DNA of 64,000 nucleotides from Tubulanus polymorphus (taxonomy: Eukaryota > Animalia > Nemertea), in assembly GCF_964204645.1 (NCBI RefSeq), contig NC_134032.1, positions 11,396,275-11,460,274 of the forward strand. Reading direction: 5' to 3'. Position numbers and translations under genes: made by a program. Below, piece after piece: positions 1 through 64,000 of this stretch (the stretch's first letter is position 1; each line of letters begins with the position of its first letter). The notes under the pieces were generated by a model. That model worked only from the letters and a program-made list of their open reading frames with translations. It was not told the origin of the DNA and did not search any database.

Positions 1-229
1 CAGACGACGTATCTAAACGGTCGTTCTCCGGTATGGACGACGAGATGTCAATTCAACTTCGACGGGGTTCGGAAACTTTTGAAGCAGAACTGACACGAAT
101 AGCCGTTGGGTAATTGCGGAGCGGTCTCGAGGAGTCGAGCTCCGGGTCGCTGCTCTACATGTCCTGCTGGTTGGTAGGAACTCCGATGCAGCACCTTAAC
201 GGAGTCTTGGCGGCGAGATTTGCAGCGGC
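1..229 (-). pseudogene. Two-finger C2H2 alternative terminal exon, duplicate copy with premature stop (runs off window start)
   Basis: Copy of 3807-4035. Acceptor gtgcag|GC (phase 1) at 229. CQFCFKSFRTPSKLN is followed by TGA where the other copy has CGA (Arg). Confidence 0.7.
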
Positions 230-1014
230 CTGCACGTTGCAAAATAGTAACACCGTCGCAAATATACTATACGGTGTTACATATCCTACGTCGGAACAAA
301 GAGCATGTTTTTGTCTGACTGGCAATGTGTACACGATGTGTGCTGGTACGCACACTGATTGCATATGAATCAGTTTCCAAGGTGGGAGTTTGTGAGAAAA
401 ACGGAAGAGCATTTAGTTGCTATATTTAAAATAAAAGGATTTTTAAGGGATGGTTAGCGTAGTCCGGGAGGTAGTAGAATGGTAGTAGCAGGGATTGAAC
501 ATACCAAATAGGGTAAGGTTAGAAGCGGGTGAGGTCATGGTTTAGGAATTTGAAAAAAATGTACAAATTCCCATATAAGTCTAAGGTTTTTGCGTTAGAG
601 GAAGAGAAATCAGAAAGAAATGTAACAACAAGAAAAGAAAATAAGGAAATCATTCCAGATAGAAGTGCTAGTATTTAATAATCTACTCTTGAGGAAGAGG
701 CAGATCAGCGAAAAGAACCAGGTACATAGAAGATCCAGCGGTACAACATTAGTGAGAACAACGATAGATGACACAACGAGTGGTGGAGGTCTTCGTGAGA
801 CCAACAACTGGAGGAGAATTGAATAACAATTGGTTTTTTTTACAGATTGTTAAATGCCATTACAGTGGAGATTGTATAGTCGCATTACAGTAGGAGCTAC
901 GGATAAATGACGACGTAAACTTGACGTACAAAATACAAAATACAATTTACAAAATCAGAAACATTTTTCTTCTGAACAGACATCTTTCCGATAAATCATC
1001 CAAAATGAAAGTTG

Positions 1015-2106
1015 TTACCCGTGAACACCATTTGAATCGCTGCTCTGTCGTCTTGAACAGCGACACTTACTCCAAAAATTTTTGAATATTCTTATCGCTT
1101 CGGCCCTGAATCTGTCGTTAGTCCCGCAATATACGAATTAATTGACGCTCGAATCTAACGGGGTCATCACGTCAGACCCAAAAGATGATATACGGATAAG
1201 TGTATTCCGAACTTCATTGCCAACCGGCTTCGGTACACCTAAGTCAAATAGCATAACTCCATAAACCCAAAGCGAAGAAGGAAACTCTAAAATGATGAAT
1301 AAAATGACAATAGCGAGCGCCATTTTAGTCGCTTTTCGGTCGAGATTGCTTAACTTCGAATCTTGGGTGCCAAGATTTTGTCTATTTTTACCAATTCGTT
1401 TCAGCAAATATATTAGAACGACATTGAGGGTTATAAGCAATAGAATCGGTATCAGACTCGTCAAAAGTGTCGTTAAAATCAATTCTCCCCAATAATGAAG
1501 ACCGAACTGAATATCAGTTAATCCCCTTCGGGCCAGTATTGGAACGTAAAATTTTGTACACGTATCAAACCAATAGAATAAATGGCTTATATTCACAAAA
1601 TAAGGAAGACCGAAGAAAGCGAAGAAAATGTATTGCAAGCAAACGCATATCAATAAGCGTCGTTTGGTGATGTGAGCCTGCGCGAAGAGCGGGAAACTAA
1701 GACTTATAACCCGCTCCGTCGCTATCAGAACCGTTATCCAGTTCCTCGTCAATTTCGTAGACCGGTTTAGGATAAACATACCAAAATACATCCAATAAAA
1801 CCCGATAAAATTTGAACTATGATGAACCTCGGCGCGTTGAATTGAAACCCCGTAAACTAATATATTCAGCCACGGACGCAGGACGTCGCGAAAGAATTTG
1901 ACAGAGAGATAAGAAATATCAGCGACGGCCAAAGCTTCGAGCAGAAAGAGCGACCGGTGCTGCGACGATTGTCGTTTCAGGATCACGATACTGAGACTGT
2001 TGAAGAAAATACCGAACGTTATCGACATGGGTAGAAATGTGACTCGCTGTATGAATACACTTGTTAACTCAAGTTTTTCGCCGCACTTTGATTCATTTGT
2101 CGACAT
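1015..2106 (-). pseudogene. Intronless rhodopsin-class (class A) peptide GPCR, copy 1, nonsense codon in TM7
   Basis: 7TM hydrophobic pattern: N in TM1, LAVAD in TM2, ERV after TM3, EFP in TM6. TAT>TAA at ~1138 in the DSSVNYFVY motif relative to copy 2. Confidence 0.85.
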
Positions 2107-3713
2107 TGCGTATCAGGTGCCGCATTAGAAAATATGCATTACCGTCACGAATTTGATATATACCACGAATCAGCGGTTCGGTTAGTCTGAACACCAGACG
2201 ATGTACGAGTTCTCCTACGCGTCAGGAACAACTGCTGTGGATACTATACAGTTCGGATCTTGGATTGAAGAACTGATTATCTAAACGCGCGTCTAAAATT
2301 CCGATGCATTATCCGTTTCCCTAATGCTCTTTTTTATATTAAGTTAGTACATTATTTTTGATGTACCGGACTGCCTGAAAAGTAAATATATACATATACA
2401 CCACGTGTCATGTGTATTCAAGCCGGAAACATGAATAGATATGAACGTGCGTATCTAACACGTTATAATTAGCGAGACTAAAAACTTTCCGCATATGTAA
2501 TTCAAATATGTCATTCAATCAGTTGAAGCCGTTCAGTTTTTGTGATTTGATTGATGTTTTTGCGTATTCTGTCTTTGTTTAGTTGAACCGGAGAACCGAA
2601 ACTTCCGATTTTATGTACTTCGATTTCAACGAAAGAATTCTGTAATTCCGACCGCCGATGATCACACATCTATATCTGTACTTCGACCATTTCCGATTTA
2701 AAAAAATTAAACTCCCTGTTTTCCTCCCGACAAGTGCAGCGCGTTTGTACGGGACACCACATCTAAACGAATCAAACCCAGGGACAGTACCTGTTCTAAG
2801 ATCAAGAAAACCCGAATTTGATTATGATTCTGTTCTATATAAATGACCTTACACTAGACTCCGCTCAATTCGGAACAAATTAATTCGGATCAGTTCGTTG
2901 AAATATTTTTGCCAAATTGCGTCACTGTATATGAGATACAGTGTTTATAACATTCAACTCAGATATCATTGAGGTCGTAACACATTTTCAAGCTCATTAT
3001 GATCTAATCATCTAAGTGTAGGCTTGCTGAAAAAGTACATCTATATTAGATACCAATTTTGTTGATAAGTATACAAGTATTACTGCGATAAAGGCATTTT
3101 ACTCGAGTGCCCGTCCTCTACCCCTAGCCTTATCTAAAAAAAATTATTTATGAACAAAAATGGCTTACGCGGCTTTTTACCGGTTATTACAGAATCTACA
3201 ACAGAATTGGAACATCAAGAATCAACTAGATTTGGTAAAAACCTATACAGTAGTACAAAATTCCCAACTCCACATTTCCGGACTCCAACTCCAATTCCCA
3301 ACTCCACATTACTCCACATCATCCGATTTTCAAATGACGCCCAGGGCCCAGTTTTGTGCGGTCGTGACTTGAGACCAGAATTGAGCACGAAAAGGTAAAA
3401 CCCTTGTGATTAGAGATTCATCAACAACTCCTTTCTCGTATAAATCTTTCTCTTTTCATTCTTCAAATTGGCTAAATTTCTAGGCAATGCAAATGACAAA
3501 ACATAAATATTCTTACGTAAGCTTTATTGACAAAATGGTTTATTTTCAAGCCGTTTTACTAAGACATGCTCCCCATGATATATACAATGAACAAAAATAC
3601 ATACATGTACATATAGAAAATAAAACTTCCATAGATATAACTAGCGCTTGGGACCCGGTCTTGCATTTGGACATTAGGTATAAACAATATCTTAAAAGGG
3701 TTCAAAGGCCGTT

Positions 3714-4035
3714 ATAAATTGATCTGACATCGGTCCAAATCGAAGTTCGGATGCGCCCGTTTGATATGATTGGTTAAACTATACCTTCTGACTATAAGAC
3801 TTCGGGCAGACGACGCATCTAAACGGTCGTTCTCCGGTGTGGACGACGAGATGTCGATTCAACTTCGACGGGGTTCGGAAACTTTTGAAGCAGAACTGAC
3901 ACGAATAGCCGTTGGGCAAATGCGGAGCGGTCTCGAGGAGTCGAGCTCTGGGTCGCTGCTCTACATGTCCTGCTGGTTGGTAGGAACTCCGATGCAGCAC
4001 CTTAACGGAGTCTTGGCGGCGAGATTTGCAGCGGC
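3714..4035 (-). CDS. Two-finger C2H2 alternative terminal exon with a 1-bp frameshift in finger 2
   Basis: Phase-1 acceptor ttttgcaacgtgcag|GC. Encodes [38 protein letters not shown]; after the extra base it continues YSLTNHIKRAHPNFDLDRCQINL*. Confidence 0.65.
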
Positions 4036-4820
4036 CTGCACGTTGCAAAATAGTAACACCGTCGCAAATATACTATACGATGTTACATATCCTACGTCGG
4101 AACAAAGAGCATGTTTTTGTCTGACTGGCAATGTGTACACGATGTGTGCTGGTACGCACACTGATTGCATATGAATCAGTTTCCAAGGTGGGAGTTTGCG
4201 AGAAAGACGGAAGAGCATTTAGTTGCTATATTTAAAATAAAAGGATTTTTAAGGGATGGTTAGCGTAGTCCGGGAGGTAGTAGAATGGTAGTAGCAGGGA
4301 TTGAACATACCAAATAGGGTAAGGTTAGAAGCGGGTGAGGTCATGGTTTAGGAATTTGAAAAAAATGTACAAATTCCCATATAAGTCTAAGGTTTTTGCG
4401 TTAGAGGAAGAGAAATCAGAAAGAAATGTAACAACAAGAAAAGAAAATAAGGAAATCATTCCAGATAGAAGTGCTAGTATTTAATAATCTACTCTTGAGG
4501 AAGAGGCAGATCAGCGAAAAGAACCAGGTACATAGAAGATCCAGCGGTACAACATTAGTGAGAACAACGATAGATGACACAACGAGTGGTGGAGGTCTTC
4601 GTGAGACCAACAACTGGAGGAGAATTGAATAACAATTGGTTTTTTTTACAGATTGTTAAGTGCCATTACAGTGGAGATTGTATAGTCGCATTACAGTAGG
4701 AGCTACGGATAAATGACGACGTAAACTTGACGTACAAAATACAAAATACAATTTACAAAATCAGAAACATTTTTCTTCTGAACAGACATCTTTCCGATGA
4801 ATCATCAAAAATGAAAGTTG

Positions 4821-5903
4821 TTACCCGTGAACACCATTTGAATCGCTGCTCTGTCGTCTTGAACAGCGACACTTACTCCAAAAATTTTTGAATATTCTTA
4901 TCGCTTCGGCCCTAAATCTGTCGTTAGTCCCGCAATATACGAAATAATTGACGCTCGAATCTAACGGGGTCATCACGTCAGACCCAAAAGATGATATACG
5001 GATTAGTGTATTCCGAACTTCATTGCCAACCGGCTTCGGTACACCTAAGTCAAATAGCATAACTCCATAAACCCAAAGCGAAGAAGGAAACTCTAAAATG
5101 ATGAATAAAATGACAATAGCGAGCGCCATTTTAGTCGCTTTTCGGTCGAGATTGCTTAACTTCGAATCTTGGGTGCCAAGATTTTGTCTATTTTTACCAA
5201 TTCGTTTCAGCAAATATATTAGAACGACATTGAGGGTTATAAGCAATAGAATCGGTATCAGACTCGTCAAAAGTGTCGTTAAAATCAGTTCTCCCCAATA
5301 ATGAAGACCGAACTGAATATCTGTTAATCCCCTTCGGGCCAGTATTGGAACGTAAAATTTTGTACATGTATCAAACCAATAGAGTAAATGGCTTATATTC
5401 ACAAAATAAGGAAGACCGAAGAAAGCGAAGAAAATGTATTGCAAGCAAACGCATATCAATAAGCGTCGTTTGGTGATGTGAGCCTGCGCGAACAGCGGGA
5501 AACTAAGACTTATAACCCGCTCCGTCGCTATCATAACCGTTATCCAGTTCCTCGTCAATTTCGTAGACCGGTTTAGGATAAACATACCAAAATACATCCA
5601 ATAAAACCCGATAAAACTTGAATCATAATGAACCTCGGCGCGTTGAATTGAAACCCCGTAAACTAATATATTCAGCCACGGACGCAGGACGTCGCGAAAG
5701 AATTTGACAGTGAGATAAGAAATATCAGCGACGGCCAAAGCTTCGAGCAGAAAGAGCGACCGGTGCTGCGACGATTGTCGTTTCAGGATCACGATACTGA
5801 GACTGTTGAAGAAAATACCGAACGTTATCGACATGGGTAGAAATGTGACTTGCTGTATGAATACACTTGTAAACTCGAAGTTTTTCGCCGCACTTTGATT
5901 CAT
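4821..5903 (-). CDS. Intronless rhodopsin-class peptide GPCR (FMRFamide/sex-peptide-receptor-like clade), copy 2
   Basis: 360-aa ORF with 7 hydrophobic segments, LAVAD, ERV, DSSVNYFVY and helix-8 FR motifs, and an N-terminal NQS sequon. Confidence 0.85.
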   Translation of the reverse strand: MNQSAAKNFEFTSVFIQQVTFLPMSITFGIFFNSLSIVILKRQSSQHRSLFLLEALAVADISYLTVKFFRDVLRPWLNILVYGVSIQRAEVHYDSSFIGFYWMYFGMFILNRSTKLTRNWITVMIATERVISLSFPLFAQAHITKRRLLICVCLQYIFFAFFGLPYFVNISHLLYWFDTCTKFYVPILARRGLTDIQFGLHYWGELILTTLLTSLIPILLLITLNVVLIYLLKRIGKNRQNLGTQDSKLSNLDRKATKMALAIVILFIILEFPSSLWVYGVMLFDLGVPKPVGNEVRNTLIRISSFGSDVMTPLDSSVNYFVYCGTNDRFRAEAIRIFKNFWSKCRCSRRQSSDSNGVHG

Positions 5904-7329
5904 TTTTCGACATTGCGTATCAGGTGCCGCATTAGAAAATATGCATTACCGTTACGAATTTGATATATACCACGAATCAGCGGTTCGGTTAGTCTGAACA
6001 CCAGACCCTGTACGAGTTCTCCTACACGTTAGGAACAACTGCTGTGGATACTATACAGTTCGGATCTTCGATTGAAAAACTGATTATCTAAACGCGCGTC
6101 TAAAATTCCGATGCATTATCCGTTTCTCTAATGCTGTTTTTTTTAAATATTAAGTTAGTACATTATTTTTGATGTACCGGACTGCCTGAAAAGTAAATAT
6201 ATACATATACATACGCACCACGCGTCATGTGTATTCAAGCCGGAAACATGAATAGATATGAACGTGCGTATCTAACAGGTTATAATTAGCGAGACTAAAA
6301 ACTTTCCGCATATGTAATTCAAATATGTCATTCAATCAGTTGAAGCCGTTCAGTTTTTGTGATTTGATTGATGTTTTTGCGTATTCTGTCTTTGTTTAGT
6401 TGAACCGGAGAACCGAAACTTCCGATTTTATGTACTTCGATTTCAACGACTGCTGTGGATACTATACAGTTCGGATCTTAGATTGAAAAACTGATTATCT
6501 AAACGCGCGTCTAAAATTCCGATGCATTATCCGTTCCCCTACTGCTGTTTTTAATATTAAGTTAGTACATTATTGTTGATGTACCGGACTGTCTGAAAAG
6601 TAAATATATACATATACATACGCACCACGCGTCATGTGTATTCAAGCCGGAAACATGAATAGATATGAACGTGCGTATCTAACAGGTTATAATTGCCAGG
6701 ACTCAAAAAAACTTTTTCCGCACATTATTAATGCATTCATTATTAAAATATGTCATTCAATCAGTTGAAACCCGTTTGTCGACCTTCCTTTCATAAAACC
6801 ATGTTAACCGTTGAACAGGATTCTAAATTCCCCTCATTTTCATAGCATGGTGGGGATGTTATAGCAGACGTACATTCGATCGTGGTCGACACAGACAAGA
6901 TCAAGAATACGAACAAGACTGTGCAGAAAACCCGTTATCGCTGCTTTGCAGCTATATTAAAAATCTATTTTTCAATCAGTTGAAACCGTTCAGTATTGTG
7001 ATTTGATTGATTGATGTCAGTAGGGCCTACGTACGTTTTTGCGTCTTCTGTCTTTGTTTACATGAACCAATTATGTACTTAGATTTCATTTGCATGAACT
7101 GTTTAAAGACAAACACGAACAACTTGGTTTTCAATCTTATTTATTACATAAATCTTACATCTTTTACTTGCAGGAGAAACAAACGAACAGATCGCTGTTG
7201 TATACAATGCCATTAGTCGTCTTCGTAGAAAACTGATATAATGTCAGTTTTCGCAAAAGGTTAGTGCCGCAAGGCTTCGTCGGCAAACCTGCGCTGAACT
7301 TGCGCACCCGGGCGAGTGTCTAGTGTGGC

Positions 7330-7386: not shown

Positions 7387-7485
7387 GAGGATGGTCTGGG
7401 TATGATCTGCGGGGTGAAAAAAAAACTTTATTGAAAAATAAATTCTGATGATATCGATGATGATCCGTGTCAACTAACATCGAAT

Positions 7486-8210
7486 CTAGAAATCAAATGT
7501 GTTTGGGTCGACGTTATGAATGCGCTTCATGTGCTGTTTGCAGTTATATTTCAGATTAAAACGTTGCTCGCACATCGGACATTTAATCGGTTTTTCGCCG
7601 GTGTGAATTCGCTCGTGTATCGCCAAATTTACGCTAGTTTTCATCCTTTTACCGCAAAACTGACATTTAAACGGTCGTTCATCTAAATGAACTAGATTCA
7701 TGTGCTGTTTACAATGTGATTTCAGCGCGAAACATTTCTCACAAGTCGGGCATTTAAATGGTCGTTCATCGGTATGAACCAGTTTCATGTGCCGTTTACG
7801 GTTCGATTTCTGAGTAAAACATTGCTCGCACATTAAACATTTAAACGGTTTATCCCCGGTGTGAATTCGCTCGTGTTGTTTACATAATGCGGGAATATTA
7901 AACCATTTATCACAAAACTGACATTTGTATTTTTTACTATTGCCAGCCTTGAATTTCTCAGATGATACATGGCTATTCGGGCAAACATTGTGAACCTGCT
8001 TCATGTGCCGGTCACAGCTCGACTTCACCATGAAACATTGCTCGCACGTCAGACATTTAAACGGTTTTTTGCCGGTACTACCAGGCTCAATGTTACCCCC
8101 TTTACATCCTGTTGCTATTTTCAATCGACCTTGAGCATTGACCTTACCAGCGGGAAGACGACTCAGTTCAACAGACGGCAGTAATTCATTCGGCACGTCG
8201 TATCCGACAC
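7486..8210 (-). CDS. Variable terminal ZF exon, unit A, 6 C2H2 fingers
   Basis: Acceptor tttgtag|GTGTCGGATAC at 8210. Intact ORF ending DPNTFDF*. AATAAA on the minus strand at 7427-7432. Confidence 0.85.
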
Positions 8211-9444: not shown

Positions 9445-10340
9445 TTAGAAATCAAACGTGTTTGGGTCGACGTCATGAATGCGTTTCATGTGCTGTTTAC
9501 GGTTATATTTCACATTAAAACACTCCTCGCACATCGGACATTTAAACGGTTTTTCGCCGGTGTGAATTCGCTCGTGTACCTCCAAATTTACCCTAGTTTT
9601 CATCCTTTTACCGCAAAACTGACATTTAAACGGTCGTTCATCTGAATGAACCAGTTTCACGTGCTGTTTACACTGTGATTTCAGCGCGAAACATTTCCCA
9701 CACACCTCACATTTAAACGGTTTTTCATCGGTATGAACCAGTTTCATGTGCACTTTACAGTTAGATTTCCACGTAAAACACGACTCGCACATTGGACATT
9801 TGAACGGTTTTTCGCCGGTGTGAATTCGCTCGTGTCGTTTAATGTCTGAGAGAAAAGTAAACCCTTGATCGCAAAAACGGCATTTAAACGGTCGTTCATC
9901 GGTATGAACCAGTCTCATGTGCGTTTTACGGTTTGATTTCTGAGTAAAACGTTGCTCGCACATCTGACATTTAAACGGTTTATCACCGGTGTGAATTCGC
10001 TCGTGTGTTTTACGTGATGCGGGAAAACTAAACCACTTATCGCAAAACCGACATTTGTACTTTTTACTATAGCGAGCCTTGACCTTCTCAGATGAAACAT
10101 GGCTATTCGGGCAAACATTATGAACCTGTTTCATGTGCCGGTCACAGCTTGATTTTACCATAAAACGTTTCTGACATGTCGGACATTTGAATGGTTTTTT
10201 GCAGTTACTTCCAGGGTCAATGTTACCCCCTTTACATCTTGTTGCTATTTTCAATCGACCTTGAGCATCAAACTTTCCAGCGGGCAGACGACTCAGTTCA
10301 ACAGACGGCAGTAATTCATATGGCACGACGTATCCGACAC
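9445..10340 (-). CDS. Variable terminal ZF exon, unit A, 8 C2H2 fingers
   Basis: Same phase-1 acceptor at 10340; intact ORF with TGEKPF-type linkers. Confidence 0.85.
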
Positions 10341-11064
10341 CTACAAAGAGTCATTAGAATCAAATTTAAGGTTCATCTTCACAATTCCGCGTCTGAATCC
10401 AGTGAGAATTGAACGACTGGTGAAATAATAAACAGAGCTTGAAGACAAATATCATCCTGAAGAAACTAATTCGTTCCTTACGAAGTTATGATGGTGTTTC
10501 ACGTGCAATGAGGACTCGTTCGACTGTGGCAATCGAGGATTCCACTTGTGGCAAGCAAACATCCACCTGTTCGTTAGTGTGCATTCAGACAACAATTCCC
10601 GAATTTCTCCTCAGATTCAATTAACTCTATCCATAATTTCTCATATTCTATGAATGGTGATTAATAAAATTCATGCTATATATGAACCTAAAGATCATCT
10701 GAGTTTATCGAGAAGAGTGATTTGCCTAATTTCGGATGGAGGCTAAAAATCTAGATAAAAGTTCATTCACTGAAAATGAACTAGATTTTGACAGGTTGTG
10801 ACACTGATACACACGTTATCAAGTGGGAGAGCTGGTGGCACGGAGTCCTCATTAACGGTTTTCATTCTGATTGAAATATTGCTCACACTTCGAATGTTAA
10901 AATGGTTTTTCATTTGCGTGAACTATCAAAGACAAACCCGGAGGTAATTTTGGTTTTCAATTAATTTATTTCTTATTCATTTCTTATTTATTTGATTAAT
11001 CTTACATCTTATATTCGCTTTTGTGACATATTAACAATTAACCATCTTCATAGAAAAACGATAA

Positions 11065-11650
11065 GTTTATATAAGTATAATTACAAAATATGATATCTTG
11101 ATATAAGTTTCCATGAGTATATACATGACCGGATATACTGGTAGCCCGATGTGGCTGAAACCCTAAAATAGGGCAGTGTAACCGTTAAAAAAGGAGTAGA
11201 TGATAAAAAGAATAAGGTGATAGATGACGAAATGAAGCTTACACTTATGCTGAATGATAGCAAGTCTGCGTATATGGCCAAAATAACAGAAATTTATAAG
11301 AAATTAATGTAAAATAATGTGTTATTAATGATTATAGGGAATCAGCTTGATTGGATGTATCGGCATAGAAATAAGTTAACACGAATGGAAGGTTAATTTT
11401 CTAAACTGTTATCTGGGTTGGGGAGTTCTTTATGTCATCACAGCTGTTCTACCAGACTGTTGGTATTTTACCTAAGAAGGATCCGGAAAGAGGTATGAGG
11501 TGCAAGTCTAGGGTGATTTTTACATCGGGTATTGTAATCATGATAGGCTGCATTTTTCTCAAAGATGTTCAGGATGGGGGATGGGAGGTCTGTCTTACAA
11601 AATTTGTATCCAGATTAAATCAATTCAGGGTTTACAAGATCATCGAAAAA
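11065..11650 (-). mobile_element. 5'-truncated LINE fragment (CR1/L2-type ORF2 C-terminus)
   Basis: Minus strand reads KFCKTDLPSPILNIFEKNAAYHDYNTRCKNHP, with the HxYNTR motif of CR1/L2-group ORF2 ends. Absent from paralogous spacers. Confidence 0.55.
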
Positions 11651-12047
11651 AATCTTACATCTCATACTGGCTTTTGTAACGTACTATCAATTAATCATCT
11701 CCATAGAAAAATTATTTGAAAAAAGTTTTCCAGCCACTTCTTTTGAATCCAATACTGAAATACTAAAATTTCTCTAAAACTTTGCGGAAAGAAAACAATA
11801 GTGTTTCAGATCTATAAAATTACTCATGAACCCTGTATATAATACATTGTATCAACTTTATAAGTTAACTGAATTATTTTCCGATCTATAGAATCCAAGT
11901 CTGTTTAAACTTAAACCTAACTTGAACCGAACATTCTACAAAACCTCACATAGGCTAACTAAAACTCCTTTTGACATTCAATCAACTTTTCAAAAATCTG
12001 ATGCCTTCCGGTCGGAATCATGAATCCATTTGAACCACAGTCAACCC

Positions 12048-12176
12048 CCGATATACCGACACCCCGCCTACCGCCAGGTTTTCCCAATGTTCATCTCTAT
12101 ACAAATTCATAGTATAACACCCTTACCGCCGAAATCGTTCAGTACCGATGTGGGCGGTATATCGGGGGTCGACTGT
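12048..12176. mobile_element. Tc1/mariner-like MITE; related copies at ~22692-22871, 25325-25490, 31935-32073, 40634-40821, 42984-43121, 55550-55736, 60823-60940
   Basis: TIRs cagtcaacccccgatataccg ... cggtatatcgggggtcgactg with TA flanks in most copies. Propagated with the exon duplications. Confidence 0.75.
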
Positions 12177-12349
12177 AGTTTCAAGCGTTCTTCTGTTACA
12201 GTTTCCTTACAGTCAGAACTGTTTTTGGTTTTTCATTGGTTTGTATCAGCATGTGTTAGGTGTGATCTGATATATAAGGAAAAACCTTTCACTAAAATTC
12301 AACTTCGATGATAACTAACGACGATGATCAACTTCAACTAACATTAAAT

Positions 12350-13336
12350 TAAGAAATCGAATGTTTGGCTCATGAATGCTTTTCATGTGTTGTTTACAGT
12401 TATATTTTCGATTGAATTGATCGAACATTTAAACGGTTTTTCGCCGGTGTGCACGCGCTCGTGTCGCTTCAAATGGTAACTAGTTTTCATCCATTTATCG
12501 CAAACATTTGAACGGTCGTTCATCGGAATGAACTTGTCTAATGTGCACTGTACAGGATCCTTTCCGACTAAAGCGTTGCCCGCACGTCGGACATTTAAAC
12601 GGTTTTTCACCGGTGTGAATTTGCTCGTGTTGCTTCAATTGGGTGCGATTTTTTATCCGTTTAGTGCAAAATTGACATCTAAACGGTCTTTCATTGGAGT
12701 GAACTTCTTTTATGTGCGTTTGACATGTTGATTTCTGCGTAAAACGTTGCTCGCGCGTCGGACATTTAAACGGTTTTTCGCCGGTGTGAATTCGCTCGTG
12801 TACCTTCAAACCGTAGCGAGTTTTCATCCATTTATAGCAAAACTGACATTTAAATGGTCTTTCATCGGTATGAACAAGTTTCATGTGCATGTTACAGTTC
12901 GATTTCCGAGTGAAAGCTTTCTTGCATATCGGACATTTGAACGGTTTTTTGCCGGAGTGAGTTCGCTCGTGTATATTCAAATAGTTGCGAGTTTTTAACC
13001 GTTTATCGCAAAACCGACATTTAAACAGTCTTTCATCCGTATGAACACGTTTAAAATGCACCTCACGGCTTCTTTTGAGCCTAAAACATTTCTCACATGT
13101 CGGACATTTAAACGGTTTTTCACTGGTGTGTGTTCGCTCACGCCGTGTACAATCTGCAGTCATCAACGCGTTAGACTTAGATCTATAGGCGGCTTCACTA
13201 GAACTAACAGGTTCGATGTTAACCTTTTCACATCCTGTCGCTATTCTAAATCGACCTTGAGCATTGTCCTTTCCAATTGGCAGACGACTCAGTTCAACCG
13301 ACGGCAATAACTTGCGCGGCACGTCGTATCCGACAC
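12350..13336 (-). CDS. Variable terminal ZF exon, unit A, ~7 fingers in frame then frameshifted tail (decaying)
   Basis: Acceptor at 13336; ORF to 12495. One Cys>Arg finger. A deletion near 12505 shifts further fingers out of frame. Confidence 0.7.
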
Positions 13337-13477
13337 CTACAAAGAGTTGTAAGAGAATCCAGATTTTAATTTATGGCGCATCAACATTTCAAACATCGTA
13401 TTTCGAGGTTGAATGAACAAAGCTGAAACAACGAAATAGATTCATGATCGGAGAATAAAATCAATAGATGCTACTCG

Positions 13478-14397
13478 TGAAAACCGTCTGCTAGTTTGTG
13501 AAATCAGTCTGCTAGTTAGTGAAATCAGTCTGCTAGCTTGTGAAATCAGTCTGCTAGTTTATGAAATCAATCTGCTAGTTTATGAAATCAGTCTGCTAGT
13601 TTATGAAATCAGTCTGCTGGTTTGTGAAATCAGCTTGCTAGTTTATGAAATCAGTCTGCTAGTTTGTGAAATCAGTCTGCTAGTTTGTGAAATCAGTCAG
13701 CTAGTTTGTGAAATCAGTCTGCTAGTTTGTGGAATCAGTCTGCTAGTTTGTGAAATCAGTCCGCTAGATTGTGAAATCAGTCTGCTAGTTTATGAAATCA
13801 ATCTGCTAGTTTATGAAATCAGTCTGCTAGTTTATGAAATCAGTCTGCTGGTTTGTGAAATCAGTCTGCTAGTTTGTGAAATCAGTCTGCTAGTTTGTGA
13901 AATCAGTCTGCTAGCTTGTGAAATCAGTCTGCTAGTTTATGAAATCAATCTGCTAGTTTATGAAATCAGTCTGCTAGTTTATGAAATCAGTCTGCTGGTT
14001 TGTGAAATCAGCTTGCTAGTTTATGAAATCAGTCTGCTAGTTTGTGAAATCAGTCTGCTAGTTTGTGAAATCAGTCAGCTAGTTTGTGAAATCAGTCTGC
14101 TAGTTTGTGGAATCAGTCTGCTAGTTTGTGAAATCAGTCTGCTAGTTTATGGAATCAGTCTGCTAGTTTATGGAATCAGCCTGCTAGTTTGTGAAATCAG
14201 TCTGCTAGTTCATGGAATCAGCCTGCTAGTTTATGGAATCAGCCTGCTAGTTTGTGAAATCAGCCTGCTAGTTTGTGAAATCAGTCCGCTAGATTGTGAA
14301 ATCAGTCTACTAGTTTATGGAATCAGTCTGCTAGTTTATGGAATCAGCCTGCTAGATTGTGAAATCAGTCTGCTAGTTTGTGAATCAGTCCGCTAGT
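13478..14397. repeat. 21-bp minisatellite (gaaatcagtctgctagtttgt), ~44 units
   Basis: Directly visible tandem repeat with variant units and repeated higher-order blocks. Confidence 0.98.
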
Positions 14398-14761
14398 TTC
14401 CAAGTTCCTGAATCGCGAATGTTTCCATGTTGAAGTTATGACGACATTTTAGGCGACATTTACAATGAGCTTTCTGCGTGAATCTCAAATCGCAATTGGA
14501 CATTTAAACGGACGTTCGCCGGTGTGCACGCATTCGTGTCGCGTTAAATCAATAAATCCTTTGAACAGCTTCCCACAAAACTGACATCTATGTTTCATGG
14601 TTGTGTCACCAGGTGGGGTATTTCCGTACTCAATGTAGAGATATATTTGCCAGTTCCGTCGATTTTGGTTTTTCGTTGTGACGCGGTATTTTTACGGCTG
14701 ACAGTCAACCATTTAGTACCAGAAATCGTCGGTTCCCTGGGCTCATCGGTGAAAGCGCCAC
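14393..14761 (-). pseudogene. Degenerate two-finger variable exon
   Basis: Acceptor ctctttccag|GT at 14761. Contains [34 protein letters not shown] and [10 protein letters not shown] in shifted frames. Confidence 0.65.
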
Positions 14762-16032
14762 CTGGAAAGAGCCATGAGAACCGATGATATGCGTGCGTTT
14801 AGATAATGACGTTACGTACGAAAGGGGGTCAGAACAAATTTCCGAGGACACAAACTAGAGCGGCGTTTAAACGACTTAAACCTAAAAATGTCGGTTTGAA
14901 GAGAAAAACTAGATATTCCGCATCCTTGGAAAAACAACAATGACGAGACCTAGAAAAATCCTGTTCCTCGCAGCTGACATCAAATATAATGGAGAGTCAT
15001 GGAATATTAACAGTTGCTAAAAAGGGTCACCTGAAATACAAACATTTATGGGCCTGGTTCCACAACAGGACTTAAGATCTAAAATTGAGGTTTGAGACTC
15101 TTTGAATCAAACTCAATCTTGTTCTGATATCACATCATCACTGTGGAACCAGCTCCGCAGTAAGTTCCTTTATAAAGTATGTTTGTTCTGGTACGCTCAC
15201 TTTTCCTTAACGCCTGCAAAATTGATTTTTCCCCAGTTCCCGCGCTCTAACATAGCTGAGGTTCATGCATACTTTATTAAACTAGGGTTCCAGGAACTTG
15301 GAAAGTGGTTTGACATCAGAAAATGTCAATATTCAACACCCCTCAGTGAACTGACATGCGTGCTGTGTCCGGTTTAAAAGTTGTCGCCGAAATCCAGACT
15401 ATTGAGGCGAATTTCTAGTTGTAGTCGAACAGGGAGATCGAATTGAAATAAATTTTCAATGATTTCAAATTCAAAATCAAGTGACAACTTTAGAACGATG
15501 GCCTTAAATCTATGTCTAATACTGTTAGGTTAGGTAGATGATAAGCCTAGCCTAGTTGCAACCATATATTGTTGATAATGGATCGCTCACATCAAAGTGT
15601 ATGACAGTGATTGAGAACTAGCTGCTCAAAAGTAGAACAGGGGCAACTGGCTGGAACTGGAGATAGATGGACGTTAACCAGTCGTAACCTAGCTCTCATT
15701 GACACATTCAAGCAATTGATTGTATCCAGCCAGTTGCTCTTGTGCGTCAAAAACTGCCCGGCAACAAGTTGTCTCCGACCAATCTCAGTGTTGATGTAGG
15801 CTAGGCTTTAAATTAACCGTCTTATATCAATCAGATATTTTTCAAAAATCAAAACGGAATATAACTCTTATTTTTCAGCTCTCAAAAACCACAGAAATTC
15901 TTTCTTCAATTAACAAGGCAAAACTGTACGGGTGGCAAAAGATTTGAGACTTTTGTTTTTTGAGTGGAATGCGCAAAATGTGGTGTTTAAAAACTGGACA
16001 AGTGAATTGATAGAATGGCTGTTAACACCTAC

Positions 16033-51630: not shown

Positions 51631-53872
51631 TGCCCTTTATTTCAATTTCAATTTCGATATTTATGGTACGATAACCACACTCAAACGTGGTGAACAGATC
51701 AATAAGATGAAAACCCACTATGTACAAATTAAAGCAATTTTAAAATCGAGAATTTATTTATTCAAATAATCTAATATATTAATTACACGACGTTTTGATC
51801 TCACCCTAGAGATCACCGACGAACTAAACACAGGGGTGTAGCCCTGTTTTTCTCGGCGTTTTTCTGTATATATATACAGATGAGAACCTGTATATCCTCT
51901 GTATATATACAGAGGAGAACAGGTTAATTGAGTAGATTAGTGAGTAAGTAATAAGTGTTTGGCAAGGCATGAAGTAATATACTTAGAAAGCGCTTGGACT
52001 GGACTGCTAGACTGCAAGAGGTACATCAAATTTAGAAATCAAACGTGTTTGGCTGAAAATCATGAATGTTTCATGTTTTTTTTGCAATTTCCTTTCTGAG
52101 TGAAGTGTTTCTCGCATATCGCACATTTAAACAGTTTTGCTTCAAATGGTCGTGAGTTTTCATCCGTTTTTCACAAAACTGACATTTAAACGGTCGTTCT
52201 TCGGCATGAAAACGTTTCTCATGCAATGAATCTGATATCCGATTAAAACATTTCTCGCACGTCGGACATTTACATGATGCATGAATAGATATGAACGCAC
52301 GTATCAAACAGGTTATAATTAGCGAGACTCAAAACTGTCAACATATGTAATTAAAATCTGTACTGTCTTTCAATCAGTTGAAGCCGTTCAGTTTTTGTGA
52401 TTTGATTGATGTTTTTGCATTTTTTGTCTTTGTTTACGTGAACTGGGGAAGCGAAACTTCCAATTTTTTTGTACTTCGATTTCAACGAAATCATTCTGTA
52501 ATTCCGACCGCCGATGATCACACAACTATATCTCTACTTCGACCATTTCCGATTTCAAAACATTACACTCCTTGCTTTCCTCCCGGCAGGTTCAGTGCGC
52601 TTGTACGGGAAACCAAATCTAAACGATTCAAACCCATTCTACCAATAAAGAAAAAGAAACAGGGACGGTACCTGTTTTAAGACCAATAAAACCCGAATTT
52701 GATAATGATTCTGTTCTATATGAATGACCCTACACTACTGGGCTCCGCTCAATTCGGATCAAATTAACTCGGATCAGTTCAGTTCGTTGAAATATTTTTG
52801 CCAAATTGGTGACACTTTATATGAGATACAGTGTTAATAACATTCAACTCAGATATCATTGAGGTCGGAACAAATTTTTACGTCCATCATGCTCTAATCA
52901 TCTTAGTGGAGGCTTGCTGAAAAAGCGCATCTATATTAGATACCAATTTTGTTGATAAGTATACAAGTATTACTGCGATAAAGGCATTTTACTCGAGTGC
53001 CCGTCCTCCACCCCTAGCCTTAGAAAATTCTTCATGAAGATAAAAGGCTAACGCGGCTTCATACCGGTTATTACAGAATCTACAACAGAATTGAAACATC
53101 AAGAATCACCTAAATTTGGTATAAACCTATACAGTCGTACAAAATTCCCAACTCCACATTACTGAAAGAACTGAACTAAAATTCATAATCGTTTTTTTAA
53201 TTCAAATTAATGCTGGAATATCTGTTCTGGTCGGAATTATGAAAACTTTTCACGCACAGATGGCACCACTAGTGCTACCCTGTTGCACGTTAACTCTTTC
53301 ATATCGGGTTGCTACATTAAATCGACCTTGAGCAGTAATCGTCCCGTTGGACAGCTGACTAATGGCAACTTGAATAGAGAACCTGCAACATGGATAGCGA
53401 TATTCTGAGGATTCAGATTTTATCACTTTTCATGAATCATTTTCAATGAAATTCTTTCATTTTCAAAGACGATGTTTGTCCAAACTGATTCCAAAAGAAG
53501 CTGAACACAAGCCTAAATGCGCAGCTAATGACATCACCTACGATATAATGTCATTATTAGCCAATCAGAAATCCCGTTTTATATTCGCCAGGCTTTCTCC
53601 GTTATCCGTGAAATTTTGCAATCATAATAATAATCAGCGCGACTATACAACAGGCAATCTGGATTAGTGCCGCATGTACTTGCGCACCCGGTCTAGCTAG
53701 TGTCTAGTCTGGCAGGGCTTCGCGCCGTGGCTGAGTTCAGCGATGCCATCAGGTTCGAATCCCTACTGAGGGACGATGGTGTTGAGTATGATATGCAGGG
53801 TAAAAAAAAACCTTTACTGAAAAATCAAATCTGATGATAACAATGATGATCCGTTTTAACTAACATCAAATT

Positions 53873-55037
53873 TAGAAATCAAACGTGTTTGGGTCGACGT
53901 TATGAATGCGTTTCATGTGCTGTTTACGGTTATATTTCACATTAAAACATCTCGCACATCGGACATTTAAACTGTCGTTCATCGGTATGAACAAGTCAGG
54001 GCCGGCGGAAGGTATAAACTATTGGTACGGCCACCCCAAACCGTACCTAATAGGCAGAAGCGAGTAGCGCACTCTGGTTCGTCGCAATTAATAACTGCGC
54101 GGAAAATTTTGAAAAATTTACTTATGATACACATCATGGAGCATTTCAGAATGCATTTTAATAGTCAATTTTGCCGGTTCGTTTCCACCAAGCTCCAATA
54201 GCGGTGTCCCGTGCACCGAAAATATTCGAGGTCAAAATTTGCTGGTTCTTTAGCCACACATCAAAGAATTGTCATGGCCGCCATCGACATTGTGGCGATT
54301 TGTTGGGGAGATACTTGAAGGTAGTTAAAATTGGAAGGTTGCTAAACTGGATTTAGAAATCTATAGACACAAAACCGGTTTTTTAATATCGCGATGAATC
54401 AATGTACAAGACTGGGATATGCAAACTTGAAAATATCGTAAACAGGATTATCTTGAGCTGCTATATTATGGAATTACTACATGTTTATAATATCAGAAAT
54501 ACACCAATTAAAACTTGTGAAACTATGAAACACACATTTACTATCAGTCGACGAGAGATAACTGTAAATTACTCAGACTACTGAATGATACCACCAATGA
54601 CCTAAGTTATTTTCATGTGCGGTTTTAAGTTCGATTTCTGAGTAAAACGTTGCTCGCACATCGGACATTTAAACGGTTTTTCGCCGGTGTGAATTCGCTC
54701 GTGTTGTTTACGTAATGCGGGAATATTAAACCATTTATCGCAAAACTGACATTTGTAATTTTTACTATGGCCAGCATTGACCTTCTCAGATGAAACATGG
54801 CTATTCGGGCAAACTTTATGAACCTGTTTCATGTGCCAGTCACAGCTTGATTTTACTGTATAACGTTGCTCACACGTCGGACATATAAACGTATTTTGCC
54901 AGTACTTCCAGGGCCAATGTTACCCCCTTTACATCCTATTGCTGTTTTCAATCGACCTTGAGCATCGACTTATCCAGCGGACAGACGACTCAGTTCAACA
55001 GATGGTAATAATTCAAACGGCGCGTCGTATCTGACAC
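53873..55037 (-). pseudogene. Dead variable ZF exon of unit D
   Basis: Acceptor at 55037. Same TAA and same insertion as 39084-40122, but without that copy's internal deletion. Confidence 0.8.
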
Positions 55038-56181: not shown

Positions 56182-58772
56182 TTCATTGGTGATGTACATA
56201 TTTCATGTGCTTTTTACAGCCTGATGTCTGCGTAAAATGTTTCTCGCATATCGGACATTTAAACGGTTTTCGCCGGTGTGAATTCGCTCATGTTGTTTCA
56301 AAAGGTAATTAGTTTTCATTCGTTTATCGCAAAACTGACATTTAAACGGTCGTTCACCGGTATGAACACGTTTCATGTGAAGGTTACACTGTGATTGCAC
56401 TGCGAAACATTTCTCACACGTCGGACATTTAAACGGTTTTTCGCCAGTGTGAATTCGCTCGTGTTGTTTTAAATAGGAACTAGTTTTCATTCGTTTATCG
56501 CAAAACCGACATTTAAACGGTCGTTCATCGGAATGAACCAGTTTCATGTGCGCTTGACAACGTGATTTCAGCACGAAACATTTCTCACAAGTCGGGCATT
56601 TAAACGGTCGTTCATCGGTATGAACCCGTTTCATGTGCTGTTTACAGCTTGTTTTCCACGAAAAACATTTCTCGCACATCGGACATTTAAACAGTTTTTC
56701 ACCGGTGTGAATTCGCTCGTGTTGTTTCAAATAGGAACTAGTTTTCATTCGTTTATCGCAAAACCGACATTTAAACGGTCGTTCATCGGTATGAACCCGT
56801 TTCATGTGCTTTTTACAGCTTGTTTTCCACGTAAAACATTTCTCGCACATCGGACATTTAAACGGTTTTTCACCGGTGTGCATGTGCTCGTGTAGTTTCA
56901 AATAGAAACTAGTTTTCATTCCTTTATCGCAGAACTGACATTTAAACGGTCGTTCATCGGAATGAACCTGTTTCATGTGAACGTCACGGTGTGACGTCTG
57001 CTTAAAATGTTTCTCGCAAATCGAACATTTAAATCGTTTTTCGCCGGTGTGAATTCGCTCGTGTTGTTTCAATTGGGAACTAGTTTTCATTCCATTATCG
57101 CAAAACTGACATTTAAACGGTCGTTCATCGGTATGAACCCGTTTCATGTGCGCTTGACAATGTGATTTCAGCGCAAAACATTTCTCACACGTCGGGCATT
57201 TAAATGGTCGTTCATTGGTATGAACCAATTTCATGTGATTTTTACAGGTTGATGACTGCGAAAAATGTTTCTCGCATATTGAACATTTAAACGGTTTTTC
57301 GCCGGTGTGAATTCGCTCGTGTAGTTTCAAATGGGACCTAGTTATCATTCGTTTATCGCAAAACTGGCATTTAAACGGTCGTTCATCGGAATGAACCAGT
57401 TTCACGTGCTGTTTACAATGTGCTTTCAGCACGAAACATTTCTCACACGTCGGGCATTTAAATGGTCGTTCCTCTGTATGAACCAGTTTCATGTGAAGGT
57501 TACAGCTTGCTGACCTCGAAAAATGTTTCTCGCATATTGAACATTTAAACGGTTTTTCGCCTGTGTGAATTCGCTCGTGTAGTTTCAAATGGGACCTAGT
57601 TATCATTCGTTTATCGCAAAACTGGCATTTAAACGGTCGTTCGTCGGAATGAACCAGTTTCACGTGCTGTTTACATTGTGCTTTCAGCACGAAACATTTC
57701 TCACACGTCGGGCATTTAAATGGTCGTTCCTCTGTATGAACCAGTTTCATGTGAAGGTTACAGCTTGCTGACCTCGAAAAATGTTTCTCGCATATTGAAC
57801 ATTTAAACGGTTTTTCGCCGGTGTGAATTCGCTCGTGTCGGGTCATATCATTGTGATATTTCATTCGTTTATCGCAAAACTGGCATTTAAACGGTCGTTC
57901 ATCGGAATGAACCAGTTTCACGTGCTGTTTACAATGTGCTTTCAGCACGAAACATTTCTCACACGTCGGGCATTTAAATGGTCGTTCCTCTGTATGAACC
58001 AGTTTGATGTGAAGGTTACAGCTTGCTGACCTCGAAAAATGTTTCTCGCATATTGAACATTTAAACGGTTTTTCGCCGGTGTGAATTCGCTCGTGTCGTT
58101 TAATGTCTGAGAGAAAATTAAACCCTTGATCGCAAAACTGGCATTTAAACGGTCGTTCATCGGTATGAACCTGTTTCATGTGAATGTTACGGTTTGATGA
58201 CCTCGAAAAATGTTTCTCGCATATTGAACATTTAAACGGTTTTTCGCCGGTGTGAATTCGCTCGTGTAGTTTCAAATGGGACCTAGTTATCATTCGTTTA
58301 TCGCAAAACTGGCATTTAAACGGTCGTTCATCGGTATGAACCTGTTTCATGTGAATGTTACGGTTTGATGACCTCGAAAAATGTTTCTCGCATATTGAAC
58401 ATTTAAACGGTTTTTCGCTGGTGTGAATTCGCTCGTGTGTTTTACGTAATGTGGGAAAACGAAACCATTTATCGCAAAACTGACATTTGTACTTTTTACT
58501 ATTGCCAGCCTTGAATTTCTCAGATGAAACATGGCTATTCAGGCAAACATTATGAACAAGTTTCATGTGCCAGTCACAGCTTGATTTTACTGTGAAACGT
58601 TTCTCGCACGTCGGACATTTAAACGGTTTTTGGCCGGTACTTCCAGGGTCAATATTACCCCCTTTACATCCTGTTGCTATTTTCAATCGACCTTGAGCAT
58701 CGACCGTTCCAGCGGGCAGACGACTCAGTTCAACAGACAGCAGTAATTCATTCGGTACGACGTATCCGACAC
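56182..58772 (-). CDS. Variable terminal ZF exon, unit D, 27 fingers in frame plus 1 after a frameshift
   Basis: Acceptor at 58772; 827-aa ORF. A 1-bp loss in a T-run at ~56268 precedes the last finger. Confidence 0.85.
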
Positions 58773-61859: not shown

Positions 61860-62395
61860 CCTGTAAACTCGATCAGGACTTATATCAGTTACCCACTTCT
61901 TCGACCTGTGACATTAAACTTTGACCTACTCTACTCAAAATTGAATCAGTTAGGCCTACTTATAGTCACATGATTAATTCATTAATTATTTTACATAGTA
62001 ATCGTAAACAATCAATGAATTAGAGCCCGGAAATGACAATTCAAAAACAACTTCTGTTGACCTTGACCTTTGACCTACAGGACCCAACATCTAATCAGTT
62101 ATCTATTTGCTCTAGGACAATCCATCAATTTAATTTCACCAAGTTATCTTAAACCATTCATGAGTTATAGCCCGAAAATGAAAATAGCAAAATAACTTCT
62201 GGTGACCTTGACCTTAGATCTACAGGACCCGATATGTAAGCAGTCACTGAAGGTCTCTAGGGTAACCCATCCATAAAATTTCAGCAAGTTATCTTAAATC
62301 GTTCATGAGTTAGAGCCCGGAAATTAAAAACAGACAGACTGACGACGAAGTGAATATAGTATGCCCGTCTCCCACAACGCGTTGTGGGGGCATAA
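61860..62395 (-). mobile_element. Short HINE-like element with gacctt(t)gacct repeats (the paralogous copy hosts the 44266-46538 insertion)
   Basis: Terminal hairpin cccacaac-gc-gttgtggg, GTCT-type microsatellite, internal repeats. Left boundary approximate. Confidence 0.55.
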
Positions 62396-62400
62396 AAATT

Positions 62401-63522
62401 CAGGGAGGAAAGTCACCATAGAAGAAAAATCCGGAAAATGAACATTTATTCATCTGCCCCACCTTGCGAGCGCCGAAGGCGCGAAGCAACCCTTAAGCCG
62501 CGGACACACTGGGCGATTTCGTCGGCCGACGAAATCGCCCAGGCCGCCGATTTTATGACCGATTTGATCGCCGACAGACCCAGACACACTGGGCGATTTC
62601 GTCGGCTGACGAAATCGGCGAACAGCGCCGCTTATTTTGAAACGACCAGCTGCTAGCGCCACCTTTAATAAATCAAGAGCCGTGATTGGCTGGTTAATAC
62701 GGCGCTCGAGGCGACTGATCGTCGTACCCGGACACACAGGGCGATTCTGTCGCCGGCGACGAAATCGCCGGCGACAGAATCCAACATATTGGATTCAGGC
62801 CATTTCGTCGGCCGACTAAATCGCCGAAGGCGATTGCCCGGACACACTGGGCGATTTCGTCGCTTCTTCGGGCGACGAAATCGGGCGACGAAATTTCCCA
62901 GTGTGTCCAGGCCTTTAGGGGGTTTGGGGGGCCTCCCCTAAGAAAACTTTTGAAATTACAAGCGTTTTCCGAGCACTAGAGCGATCTTGAACCCATGAAC
63001 GATCACCATATTTTGAAAGTAATGTCCATTTCCAATGCGGCACATCCACATTTCACTAACAATCAGCATCTCAAGCAGTAGAGGTCGAACCCCTAAATAA
63101 GAGAACATTGTGCATTGCGCACCGCGCTTCCCGAATGACTGTATTGAGTATAGACACTCGAGACACGACGACCCTTTGTTTTCTCACTATACATACTCAT
63201 AATAGTGGCTATAAATAGACGTAGCCTACACGTCGTACAAATGAGGTCACGTCACATAGGTGCACGGCTATCACCGAAAGATCGATAATCGTAACAGAAG
63301 GAAATTATACACTTGTTAAACGTCAGTAATAGAATCTAACTGTAAAACGAAATAAATGTTGTCCGATCTGCGGCGCTTTTACAGCCACCGGTACCAACAA
63401 ACTTTCGAATAAACCCTAACACCCCCCTCACATTTTCCCATCGTTTTTAAGCTTTTCAGAAAAATGACCCTGGACTTAAAAAATCCGAAATTCTGGATAA
63501 ATCCGGAAAACTTTCCTCCCTG
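62401..63522. mobile_element. Non-autonomous TIR element (hAT-like CAGGG ends)
   Basis: cagggaggaaagt ... actttcctccctg; absent at the paralogous site ~46883. Confidence 0.75.
62496..62914. mobile_element. PIF/Harbinger-like MITE nested in the TIR element
   Basis: TTA TSD; TIRs agccgcggacacactggg ... cccagtgtgtccaggcct; internal palindromic repeats. Confidence 0.8.
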
Positions 63523-63770
63523 TAAATTTATTTTTCAGCTTTCAAAAACCTCAGAAATTCTTTATTCAATTAACAAGGGAAAACTGAACGGATGGCAATA
63601 AACGCGAGACTTTGTTTTACGAATGCGCAAAATGAGGTTTTAAAAAATGGAGCCTAAATAAATCGATAATTGAATAAACAAAATGGCTGTTCAAACCAGC
63701 ATTTTGAATGCGCAAAATGTAGTTTTTAAGACTCGCCAAATGAATAGATGAAATCAGTGTTAACGCCTAC

Positions 63771-64000
63771 CTGACTGATCAAAATCTCCACTTGTTCCCG
63801 GTTGTCGATCATGTTGTTGTTGTTGTTGTTGTTGTTGTTGTACAATTGGTTGAGTTGAATAATCTTCATCATCGTCGCTTCCAGAAGATATTTCAACCAG
63901 TTCTATTTTCGTAAGTTTATTTCTAACACCTTCTCTGCAACCTTGGTGATGATGCGATTGTTTGAATGGAAGCGTATTGATATCAGCAGTAATTGAATCA
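63771..64000 (-). CDS. Unit D constant exon 3, 3' end (partial)
   Basis: Encodes ...KIELVEISSGSDDDEDYSTQPIV(Q)9HDRQPGTSGDFDQS with donor G|gtaggc. Confidence 0.8.

Follow-up and report, generated by a model that had tools for sequence, protein, structure and literature searches.

The question raised by this stretch of the genome of the nemertean Tubulanus polymorphus (contig NC_134032.1, positions 11396275-11460274, 64,000 nucleotides, in the following termed the window) is how its row of C2H2 zinc-finger open reading frames (ORFs) is expressed. According to an initial annotation, these ORFs are not complete genes; instead, a constant module of three exons, amplified four times, was proposed to be spliced to arrays of alternative terminal finger exons. 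We find that such an alternative-last-exon system, similar to that of Drosophila lola, is real: It was demonstrated by RNA for one unit, and the analogous use of the other acceptors is inferred from exon anatomy, selection, and cluster statistics. In our opinion, the window probably encodes members of a Tubulanus-specific family of transcription factors, in which a shared module is combined with alternative last finger exons, one per transcript. A transcript would start at the promoter of a unit, its constant donor would be spliced to one finger exon, and the transcript would end there; one effector part would thereby be brought to different DNA targets. The exon would be chosen by competition between splice sites and polyadenylation, and the isoforms would differ in their DNA target.

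In database searches, the large minus-strand ORFs proved to be most closely related to RefSeq proteins of T. polymorphus, all located on one contig; two of the database matches were flagged as encoded by the window itself. All genes of the system in the window lie on the minus strand and form four tandem units (A to D), the copies of which are paralogous and not chance matches. The constant module begins with an exon carrying the start codon (ATG exon), which contributes 148 nt of coding sequence, encodes 49 amino acids (MLLLEGVEVHV...RRQTK), and ends in phase 1 with AAAG/gt (the slash marks the splice site); a long constant exon follows. In unit A, the ATG exon (17384-17531, minus strand) ends in phase 1, and residues 1-49 of RefSeq protein P0010 map exactly to it. 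The low-complexity constant exon of this unit (16033-17226, minus strand, 1194 nt, phase 1-1) has the donor CAG/GTAGG at 16033, and the RNA joints described below originate from its end. The ATG exon of unit B (33850-33997, minus strand) ends in QTN and not in QTK; its constant exon (32350-33711, minus strand, 1362 nt, phase 1-1) has the donor at 32350. Units C and D constitute a 14.8-kb tandem duplication with an identity of 92-97%. In unit C, the acceptor upstream of the ATG exon (48696-48843, minus strand) is mutated from cag to ccg; the constant exon (47129-48538, minus strand, 1410 nt, phase 1-1) is used by protein P0006 as a cassette behind the constant exon of unit D. The latter spans 65348-63771 (1578 nt, minus strand), of which the 3' end with the donor at 63771 (63771-64000) lies within the window, and most of the unit D module is located beyond the window end. 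The ATG exon of unit D is frameshifted, and its models begin at an internal MDWLDEL. As for the three exons per module, the ATG exon and the constant exon were identified. Of the 15 units in the surrounding cluster, 13 share a conserved ttttcag acceptor approximately 30 nt ahead of the ATG; consequently, an untranslated first exon must exist, which makes the three-exon module plausible.

The four donors (16033, 32350, 47129, 63771) are identical and read ...CAGTCAG/GTAGG on the minus strand. Ten acceptors (8210, 10340, 13336, 21926, 24473, 27187, 40122, 42488, 55037, 58772) follow the pattern ...ctcttt(g)tag/GTGTCRGATACG and are preceded by approximately 75 nt of conserved intron; the five divergent sites (229, 4035, 14761, 38592, 53382) have AG/G as well. 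All splice sites of the initial annotation (donors: 4/4 CAG/GTAGG; acceptors: 15/15 AG/G) were therefore found at their positions on the minus strand. Upstream of the acceptors, conservation is clear for only about 75-100 nt, and the alignment beyond is too gappy to argue for private promoters. All introns of the system are phase 1, and the constant exons of units A to D, whose lengths are all multiples of three, are phase 1 in and out, so that any donor does fit any acceptor in frame, as had been claimed. Owing to this uniform phase, the constant exons act as cassettes that preserve the reading frame, and read-through might generate hybrids consisting, for example, of the constant exons of D and C plus exon 42488. 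The intron start behind the donors (GTAGGTGTTAACAG...; first ~110 nt, e.g. 15920-16032) is conserved across all constant-exon ends of the cluster (17/17), to a degree close to that of the adjoining exon; this may reflect an element that controls splicing or just gene conversion. A Dscam-like pairing of docking and selector sequences, computed between this intron start and the 150 nt preceding the acceptors, was rejected: Duplex energies were not better than those of shuffled sequences, with z close to 0 for every cognate pair and -2 to -3.4 for a few non-cognate ones.

The use of these sites was assessed with four sequencing runs (X1-X4) from one 2024 study, for all of which the library type is unrecorded. 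Contigs of the runs were mapped over window positions 10240-16239, which is the only stretch of at most 6 kb containing a donor and several acceptors. In X2, the depth is zero in the intron bins 13440-13839, 14240-14439, and 15040-15439 and 0.87 in 14840-15039, whereas introns and exons are both covered in the DNA-like runs X1, X3, and X4. From this depth pattern, we infer that X2 is RNA. Two joints, 13334->16031 and 14759->16031, were detected in X2 and in none of the DNA-like runs (0/3); both are cut at +2 and have CT..AC ends. They represent the GT..AG introns 16032-13337 and 16032-14762 of the minus strand, that is, exactly the predicted sites, and show one type of constant end joined to two acceptors (16033>13336 and 16033>14761). 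Each of the two joint contigs carries 29 nt of the constant end, a stub which a k=31 graph leaves if one exon end continues into several exons. The X2 contig 14502-14759 covers exon 14761. A further X2 contig (11233-12449, zero differences) runs past the stop codon of exon 13336, and the depth of X2 is 0 in bin 10840-11039; RNA with exon 13336 thus extends for about 1.3-1.45 kb and then ends, as is to be expected for a last exon. The first AATAAA after this stop codon is located at 10992. Just upstream of acceptor 13336, X2 depth is zero, too. The X2 data thus show that a shared phase-1 donor end is spliced to no fewer than two alternative exons; of these, exon 13336 has the properties of a last exon, including an extended 3' untranslated region (UTR).

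Exon 10340, whose start occurs only once in the genome, appears in another X2 joint (10342->16050, separated by 15 letters): Here, its canonical acceptor has been spliced to an end of the constant type, ...CACTGTTAATCATACAG. The constant end joined to it (...AAGTGGCACTGTTAATCATACAG) matches no assembled copy of the constant exon; the nearest assembled copies have at least 2 mismatches in 28 bases and are situated approximately 220 kb away on the opposite, plus-strand part of the cluster. The simplest reading is that this end stems from a copy which is present in the animal that donated the RNA (S2) and absent from the assembly (likely source S1). The contig would look alike under such structural variation between animals and under trans-splicing.

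The finger exons possess a common anatomy: a phase-1 acceptor, a 45-codon lead-in, a C2H2 array, an own stop codon, and presumably a 3'UTR; the stop codon, asserted for each exon, was verified by phase-1 translation. Intact arrays with 6 to 27 fingers each, as counted by a regular expression in the phase-1 translation, exist in eight of the 15 exons considered initially. They consist of tandem C2H2 fingers (PF00096/PF13465) with TGEKP-type linkers, and zf-H2C2_2 is matched with E-values of 5e-46 to 1e-58. In every intact exon, an in-frame stop codon is found 4-12 codons upstream of the acceptor; hence, no reading frame enters from upstream. The assertion that an ATG is missing before the first finger holds for five of the eight intact exons and fails for three.

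The largest array is that of exon 58772 (56203-58772, minus strand, 27 fingers), the last exon of protein P0009, which has its own stop. It contains a 258-bp tandem repeat comprising three fingers (56939-58182, 4.8 copies, 90% identity), which points to a recent expansion of the array. Exon 42488 (41260-42488, minus strand, 12 fingers, own stop) is the last exon of P0006. Unit B contributes exon 24473 (23287-24473, minus strand, 11 fingers, own stop), exon 27187 (26205-27187, minus strand, 9-10 fingers, own stop), and exon 21926 (21100-21926, minus strand, 6 intact fingers, own stop), the first finger of which is degenerate and which is followed by decayed finger fragments (20165-21042). In unit A, exon 13336 (11040-13336, coding 12495-13336, minus strand, 6 fingers) is the terminal exon with the 3'UTR of about 1.3-1.45 kb that is spliced in RNA; exon 10340 (9445-10340, minus strand, 8 fingers, own stop) is the one whose acceptor is used in RNA, and exon 8210 (7486-8210, minus strand, 6 fingers, own stop) completes the set.

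In order to characterize selection, dN/dS values (ratios of non-synonymous to synonymous substitution rates) were computed pairwise according to Nei and Gojobori. Overall values are 0.25-0.75. For the finger scaffold, dN/dS is 0.15-0.38, the lowest value being that of exon 8210 compared to exon 10340, and for the 45-codon lead-in it is 0.37-0.54. The contact residues -1, 2, 3, and 6 gave 0.8-3.5, a range which might be inflated if non-orthologous fingers were aligned. As judged from these alignments, the scaffold is under purifying selection, and the DNA-contact residues appear to diversify. The low dN/dS values signal that the distal exons without an own module (8210, 10340) are maintained as coding; the recognition helices of these two exons differ.

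The remaining exons of the initial list depart from this anatomy. Exon 14761 (14502-14761, minus strand, GAFTDEP type), although spliced to the constant end in RNA, is frameshifted: It encodes a 55-codon tail with a stop at 14595, and a single finger remnant lies out of frame behind this stop. The divergent exon 4035 (3779-4035, minus strand) comprises one and a half fingers, is used by P0010 as 4072-3782, and sits between duplicated genes of G protein-coupled receptors (GPCRs); exon 229 (48-229, minus strand) is a copy with 95-98% identity and an internal stop. Exon 40122 (38600-40122, minus strand) has an intact acceptor and is dead, as a stop occurs after 22 codons, followed by frameshifts and a remnant of the tail (...NVDPNTFDF). 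Its 97% twin, exon 55037 (53500-55037, minus strand), is dead as well, again with a stop after 22 codons and numerous frameshifts behind it. Behind the AG/G of site 38592 (38522-38592, minus strand), there is a finger-less open frame of 23 codons, and the same number of finger-less codons follows in the twin site 53382 (53312-53382, minus strand).

As revealed by a survey of 200 kb around the window, the latter forms the left end of one two-armed cluster of 245 kb. The cluster contains 15 constant modules, six on a minus arm (A to F) and nine on a plus arm (G to O), with units F and G arranged head to head. Among the stop-to-stop ORFs with at least two fingers, 99 were found in the cluster, 24 on the minus and 75 on the plus strand, and none is on the wrong strand of its arm. 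For the minus arm, the numbers of finger ORFs per unit are 3 (A), 4 (B), 1 (C), 2 (D), 4 (E), and 10 (F); for the plus arm, they are 35 (G), 5 (H), 18 (I), 1 (J), 3 (K), 4 (L), 1 (M), and 8 (O), so that up to 35 finger ORFs follow one module (unit G). Exon types recur in like order across units: The 14761-type exon is the first one behind modules G, I, and K and has 2 intact fingers there, and the 4035/229-type exon reappears close to the end of the unit G array. The exon arrays turn over fast by exon duplication, finger duplication, and decay.

The family is restricted to this one cluster. Besides, the 49-residue domain also heads distant paralogues at other Tubulanus loci: P0013 and P0014 end in two fingers, and P0016 ends in what reads as a homeodomain; P0015 and P0016 are annotated as isoform X2. 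Within the cluster, P0002 joins the ATG exon and constant exons of unit N (window coordinates 235365-240027, plus arm, approximately 171-176 kb past the window end) to three non-finger exons. A Pfam search with the non-finger tail of P0002 gave a sub-threshold Myb/SANT-like match only (E ~0.07). Judging from this model, the constant module may carry other kinds of DNA-binding ends.

The RefSeq models of the cluster were examined exon by exon or via the proteins returned from the database, and a look-up of the contigs encoding P0006 and P0010 found none on record. P0009 leads from the constant exon of unit D to finger exon 58772, and P0006, which shares the D donor with P0009, leads from the constant exon of D via that of C to exon 42488. 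Two of the predicted junctions, 63771>58772 and 47129>42488, are thus contained in models. The idea of a separate group of finger exons for each module has to be relaxed, as the units are not cleanly separate and D reads into C in P0006. P0010 (unit A) is a chain of exon 13336, a mini-exon (12466-12434), 10065-9454, 8208-7504, and 4072-3782, and P0011 (unit F, across unit E) likewise chains finger exons via internal donors placed just before each stop. The initial annotation had expected that the locus would be miscalled as about ten separate genes; instead, RefSeq fuses the finger exons into the giant proteins P0010 and P0011.

If P0010 and P0011 are taken at face value, each finger exon within a unit is spliced to the next one via a weak donor before its stop, giving one giant protein per unit, and some of the chain junctions can indeed be placed at GT..AG. 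However, X2 RNA is unbroken from 12449 to 11233, right through the first long intron of the chain, and we therefore regard the chains as minor forms at most. Moreover, the donors are weak (GTGCAC, GTTTAA), there is no GT at the mapped 7504 boundary, and P0011 contains stretches which resemble translated non-coding spacer. Each exon has retained its own stop and a selected lead-in (dN/dS 0.37-0.54) that the chain partly skips, and the canonical joints between constant and finger exons observed in RNA are unnecessary for a chain. Serial splicing as the regular mode is for these reasons improbable, and the RefSeq models of the cluster, with their giant chained proteins and no model for unit B, probably need revision. 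The presence of the dead copies 40122, 55037, and 14761, the damaged ATG exons of C and D, and rampant segmental duplication would all suit an ordinary tandem family, in which a module uses the nearest finger exon only and the additional exons are relics devoid of 5' parts. We give little credence to this explanation: In RNA, the same kind of constant end was found spliced to two exons and another acceptor was used, the scaffolds of distal exons are under purifying selection, and only 15 modules are available for 99 finger ORFs, which have conserved acceptors and without exception lie on the expected strand.

Trans-splicing in the manner of mod(mdg4), in which finger exons would have promoters of their own and their transcripts would be linked in trans to constant-exon transcripts, possibly between the opposite arms, has precedents in mod(mdg4) and lola (PMC13490949). 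It could account for the X2 contig that combines the unique start of exon 10340 with the end ...CACTGTTAATCATACAG, whose nearest relatives lie on the plus arm. This is a single contig only, however, and because its end differs in at least 2 of 28 bases from all assembled copies, an unassembled or allelic copy is the simpler source. Furthermore, X2 depth is zero upstream of acceptor 13336 with no sign of a private start, and no complementarity was found between donor and acceptor introns; we regard trans-splicing as very unlikely. The same contig and the D>C hybrid P0006 hint at a more far-reaching organization, in which the whole 245-kb cluster is one combinatorial locus and any of the 15 promoters picks cassettes or fingers across units or arms by read-through or trans-splicing. 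This is unlikely in our view; if true, a constant-by-finger matrix of factors would result that is far larger than that of lola or mod(mdg4).

Several points weigh against the reading we prefer, namely alternative last exons of which each transcript receives one. Its RNA support consists of assembled contigs from one run, the RNA nature of which is deduced, and covers one 6-kb stretch of unit A. Units A, C, and D have exactly the same 29 nt that the constant exon contributes to the joints, which makes the donor unit ambiguous; A is the nearest one upstream. The joint 16033>10340, which had been predicted, was not seen in X2, where acceptor 10340 is used with the constant end absent from the assembly. 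Unit B is without RNA or annotation support, as its constant exon occurs in no database protein of the size ranges searched, and the RefSeq chains P0010 and P0011 differ from single terminal exons. Poly(A) hexamers are present past the stop codons at a frequency below the chance expectation of ~1 per 560 nt, which was estimated from base composition, and are thus uninformative.

The shared part of these proteins was analyzed for known domains. Pfam searches with the ATG exon and the constant exon gave noise only at E<=1, with no BTB or other domain and a sub-threshold Myb/SANT-like match (E ~0.07); a recognized N-terminal effector or oligomerization domain (KRAB, SCAN, ZAD, BTB) was not detected by Pfam. 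A phmmer search with the constant part against 1.84 billion representatives found 14 proteins, none with a BTB domain, which agrees with the BTB-less common part originally postulated. Six of these 14 were looked up by name and belong to T. polymorphus; the rest were named so in other searches or are the window's own. AlphaFold2 predicted for the N-terminal part, based on ten sequences, a β-hairpin and two helices (pLDDT 76), and a Foldseek comparison of this model with the PDB gave no match. A homodimer prediction for the 60-residue N-terminal part scored 0.00 in the absence of controls, which counts neither for nor against binding. As read from the sequence, the constant exon has what look like an RGG box, runs of basic residues (KRRR), and a conserved KIEP...SSGSDDDED patch similar to a SUMO site plus an acidic SUMO-interacting motif (SIM).

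One effector module combined with many alternative DNA-binding last exons is a textbook arrangement. To our knowledge, such loci are known essentially from arthropod BTB genes. The Tubulanus family is not a member of the lola, mod(mdg4), fruitless, or broad families, because their defining BTB domain was looked for and is absent; apparently, the logic of lola and mod(mdg4) has been reinvented without BTB. A literature search on genome work in T. polymorphus yielded nothing relevant to the family. Vertebrate KRAB-ZNF genes are lineage-specific tandem polydactyl C2H2 genes, in which the scaffold is under purifying and the contact residues are under diversifying selection. The Tubulanus cluster shows a matching pattern of selection; in contrast to the KRAB-ZNF genes, which have one finger exon per gene plus KRAB, it offers several finger exons per effector module.

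For lola, the literature describes common 5' exons which are spliced to one of many alternative C2H2 3' exons, giving up to about twenty transcription factor isoforms (10.1101/132027; PMC13490949), and a common part with a TTK-type BTB, termed arthropod-specific (PMC11426971). Both systems have a shared effector part and alternative finger-coding 3' exons. They differ in that the BTB of lola is replaced in Tubulanus by an unrecognized 49-residue domain and a disordered exon, that the variable exons of lola encode 1-2 fingers versus 6-27 in the window and 2-8 in the rest of the cluster, and that, unlike in lola, the constant module has been amplified 15 times. In mod(mdg4), constitutive exons are combined with more than 30 alternative 3' exons, some of them on the opposite strand (PMC13490949), and all mRNAs are trans-spliced from independent promoters. 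The two-strand layout of the locus is similar; however, the variable parts of mod(mdg4) are not polydactyl C2H2 arrays, and for Tubulanus cis-splicing is the simpler reading, as each arm has its own constant modules. In fruitless, broad, and tramtrack, there are a few alternative 3' finger exons, which lead to isoforms with distinct targets (PMC3969260, PMC7027472); these are conserved single genes which depend on BTB and have few variants, whereas the Tubulanus cluster is fast-evolving and amplified. Tandem alternative exons joined to shared constant exons are also described for clustered protocadherins, UGT1A, and chelicerate sDscam (PMC9258826). These are the mirror image, with variable first exons that have their own promoters and constant 3' exons, and their products are not transcription factors.

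An independent nemertean version would show that the architecture has arisen convergently and is not peculiar to BTB genes. This version is characterized by an unrecognized N-terminal domain, long fast-evolving arrays, 15 modules, and about 100 finger exons. The cluster is a natural system for studying how a last exon is chosen and whether phase-uniform introns favor the shuffling of exons between tandem genes.

Other elements of the window are the following. Two genes of rhodopsin/Srw-like 7TM receptors (1138-2106 and 4821-5903, minus strand; Pfam 7TM_GPCR_Srw, E 6e-14) are part of a tandem repeat of about 3.8 kb with 98% identity (1-2632 = 3807-6449) and alternate with the 4035/229-type exons. 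An additional, third copy of this finger exon is located approximately 3.7 kb before the window start. One of the receptor genes is spanned by P0010. The intron between exon 14761 and acceptor 13336 contains a 21-bp minisatellite (13477-14399, 44 copies, 91% matches), which yields a spurious plus-strand ORF of 253 amino acids. Summed over contigs, the depth of the DNA-like runs amounts to thousands at 10440-10640, 12040-12240, and 15440-15840 versus tens elsewhere; these peaks are probably high-copy repeats in introns and the 3'UTR. A 1-kb tandem duplication (44266-46300, 92%) contains 154-bp repeats in about 4 copies, and repeats of 145 bp occupy 46540-46819 and 61997-62329 in those introns of units C and D which separate constant and finger exons.

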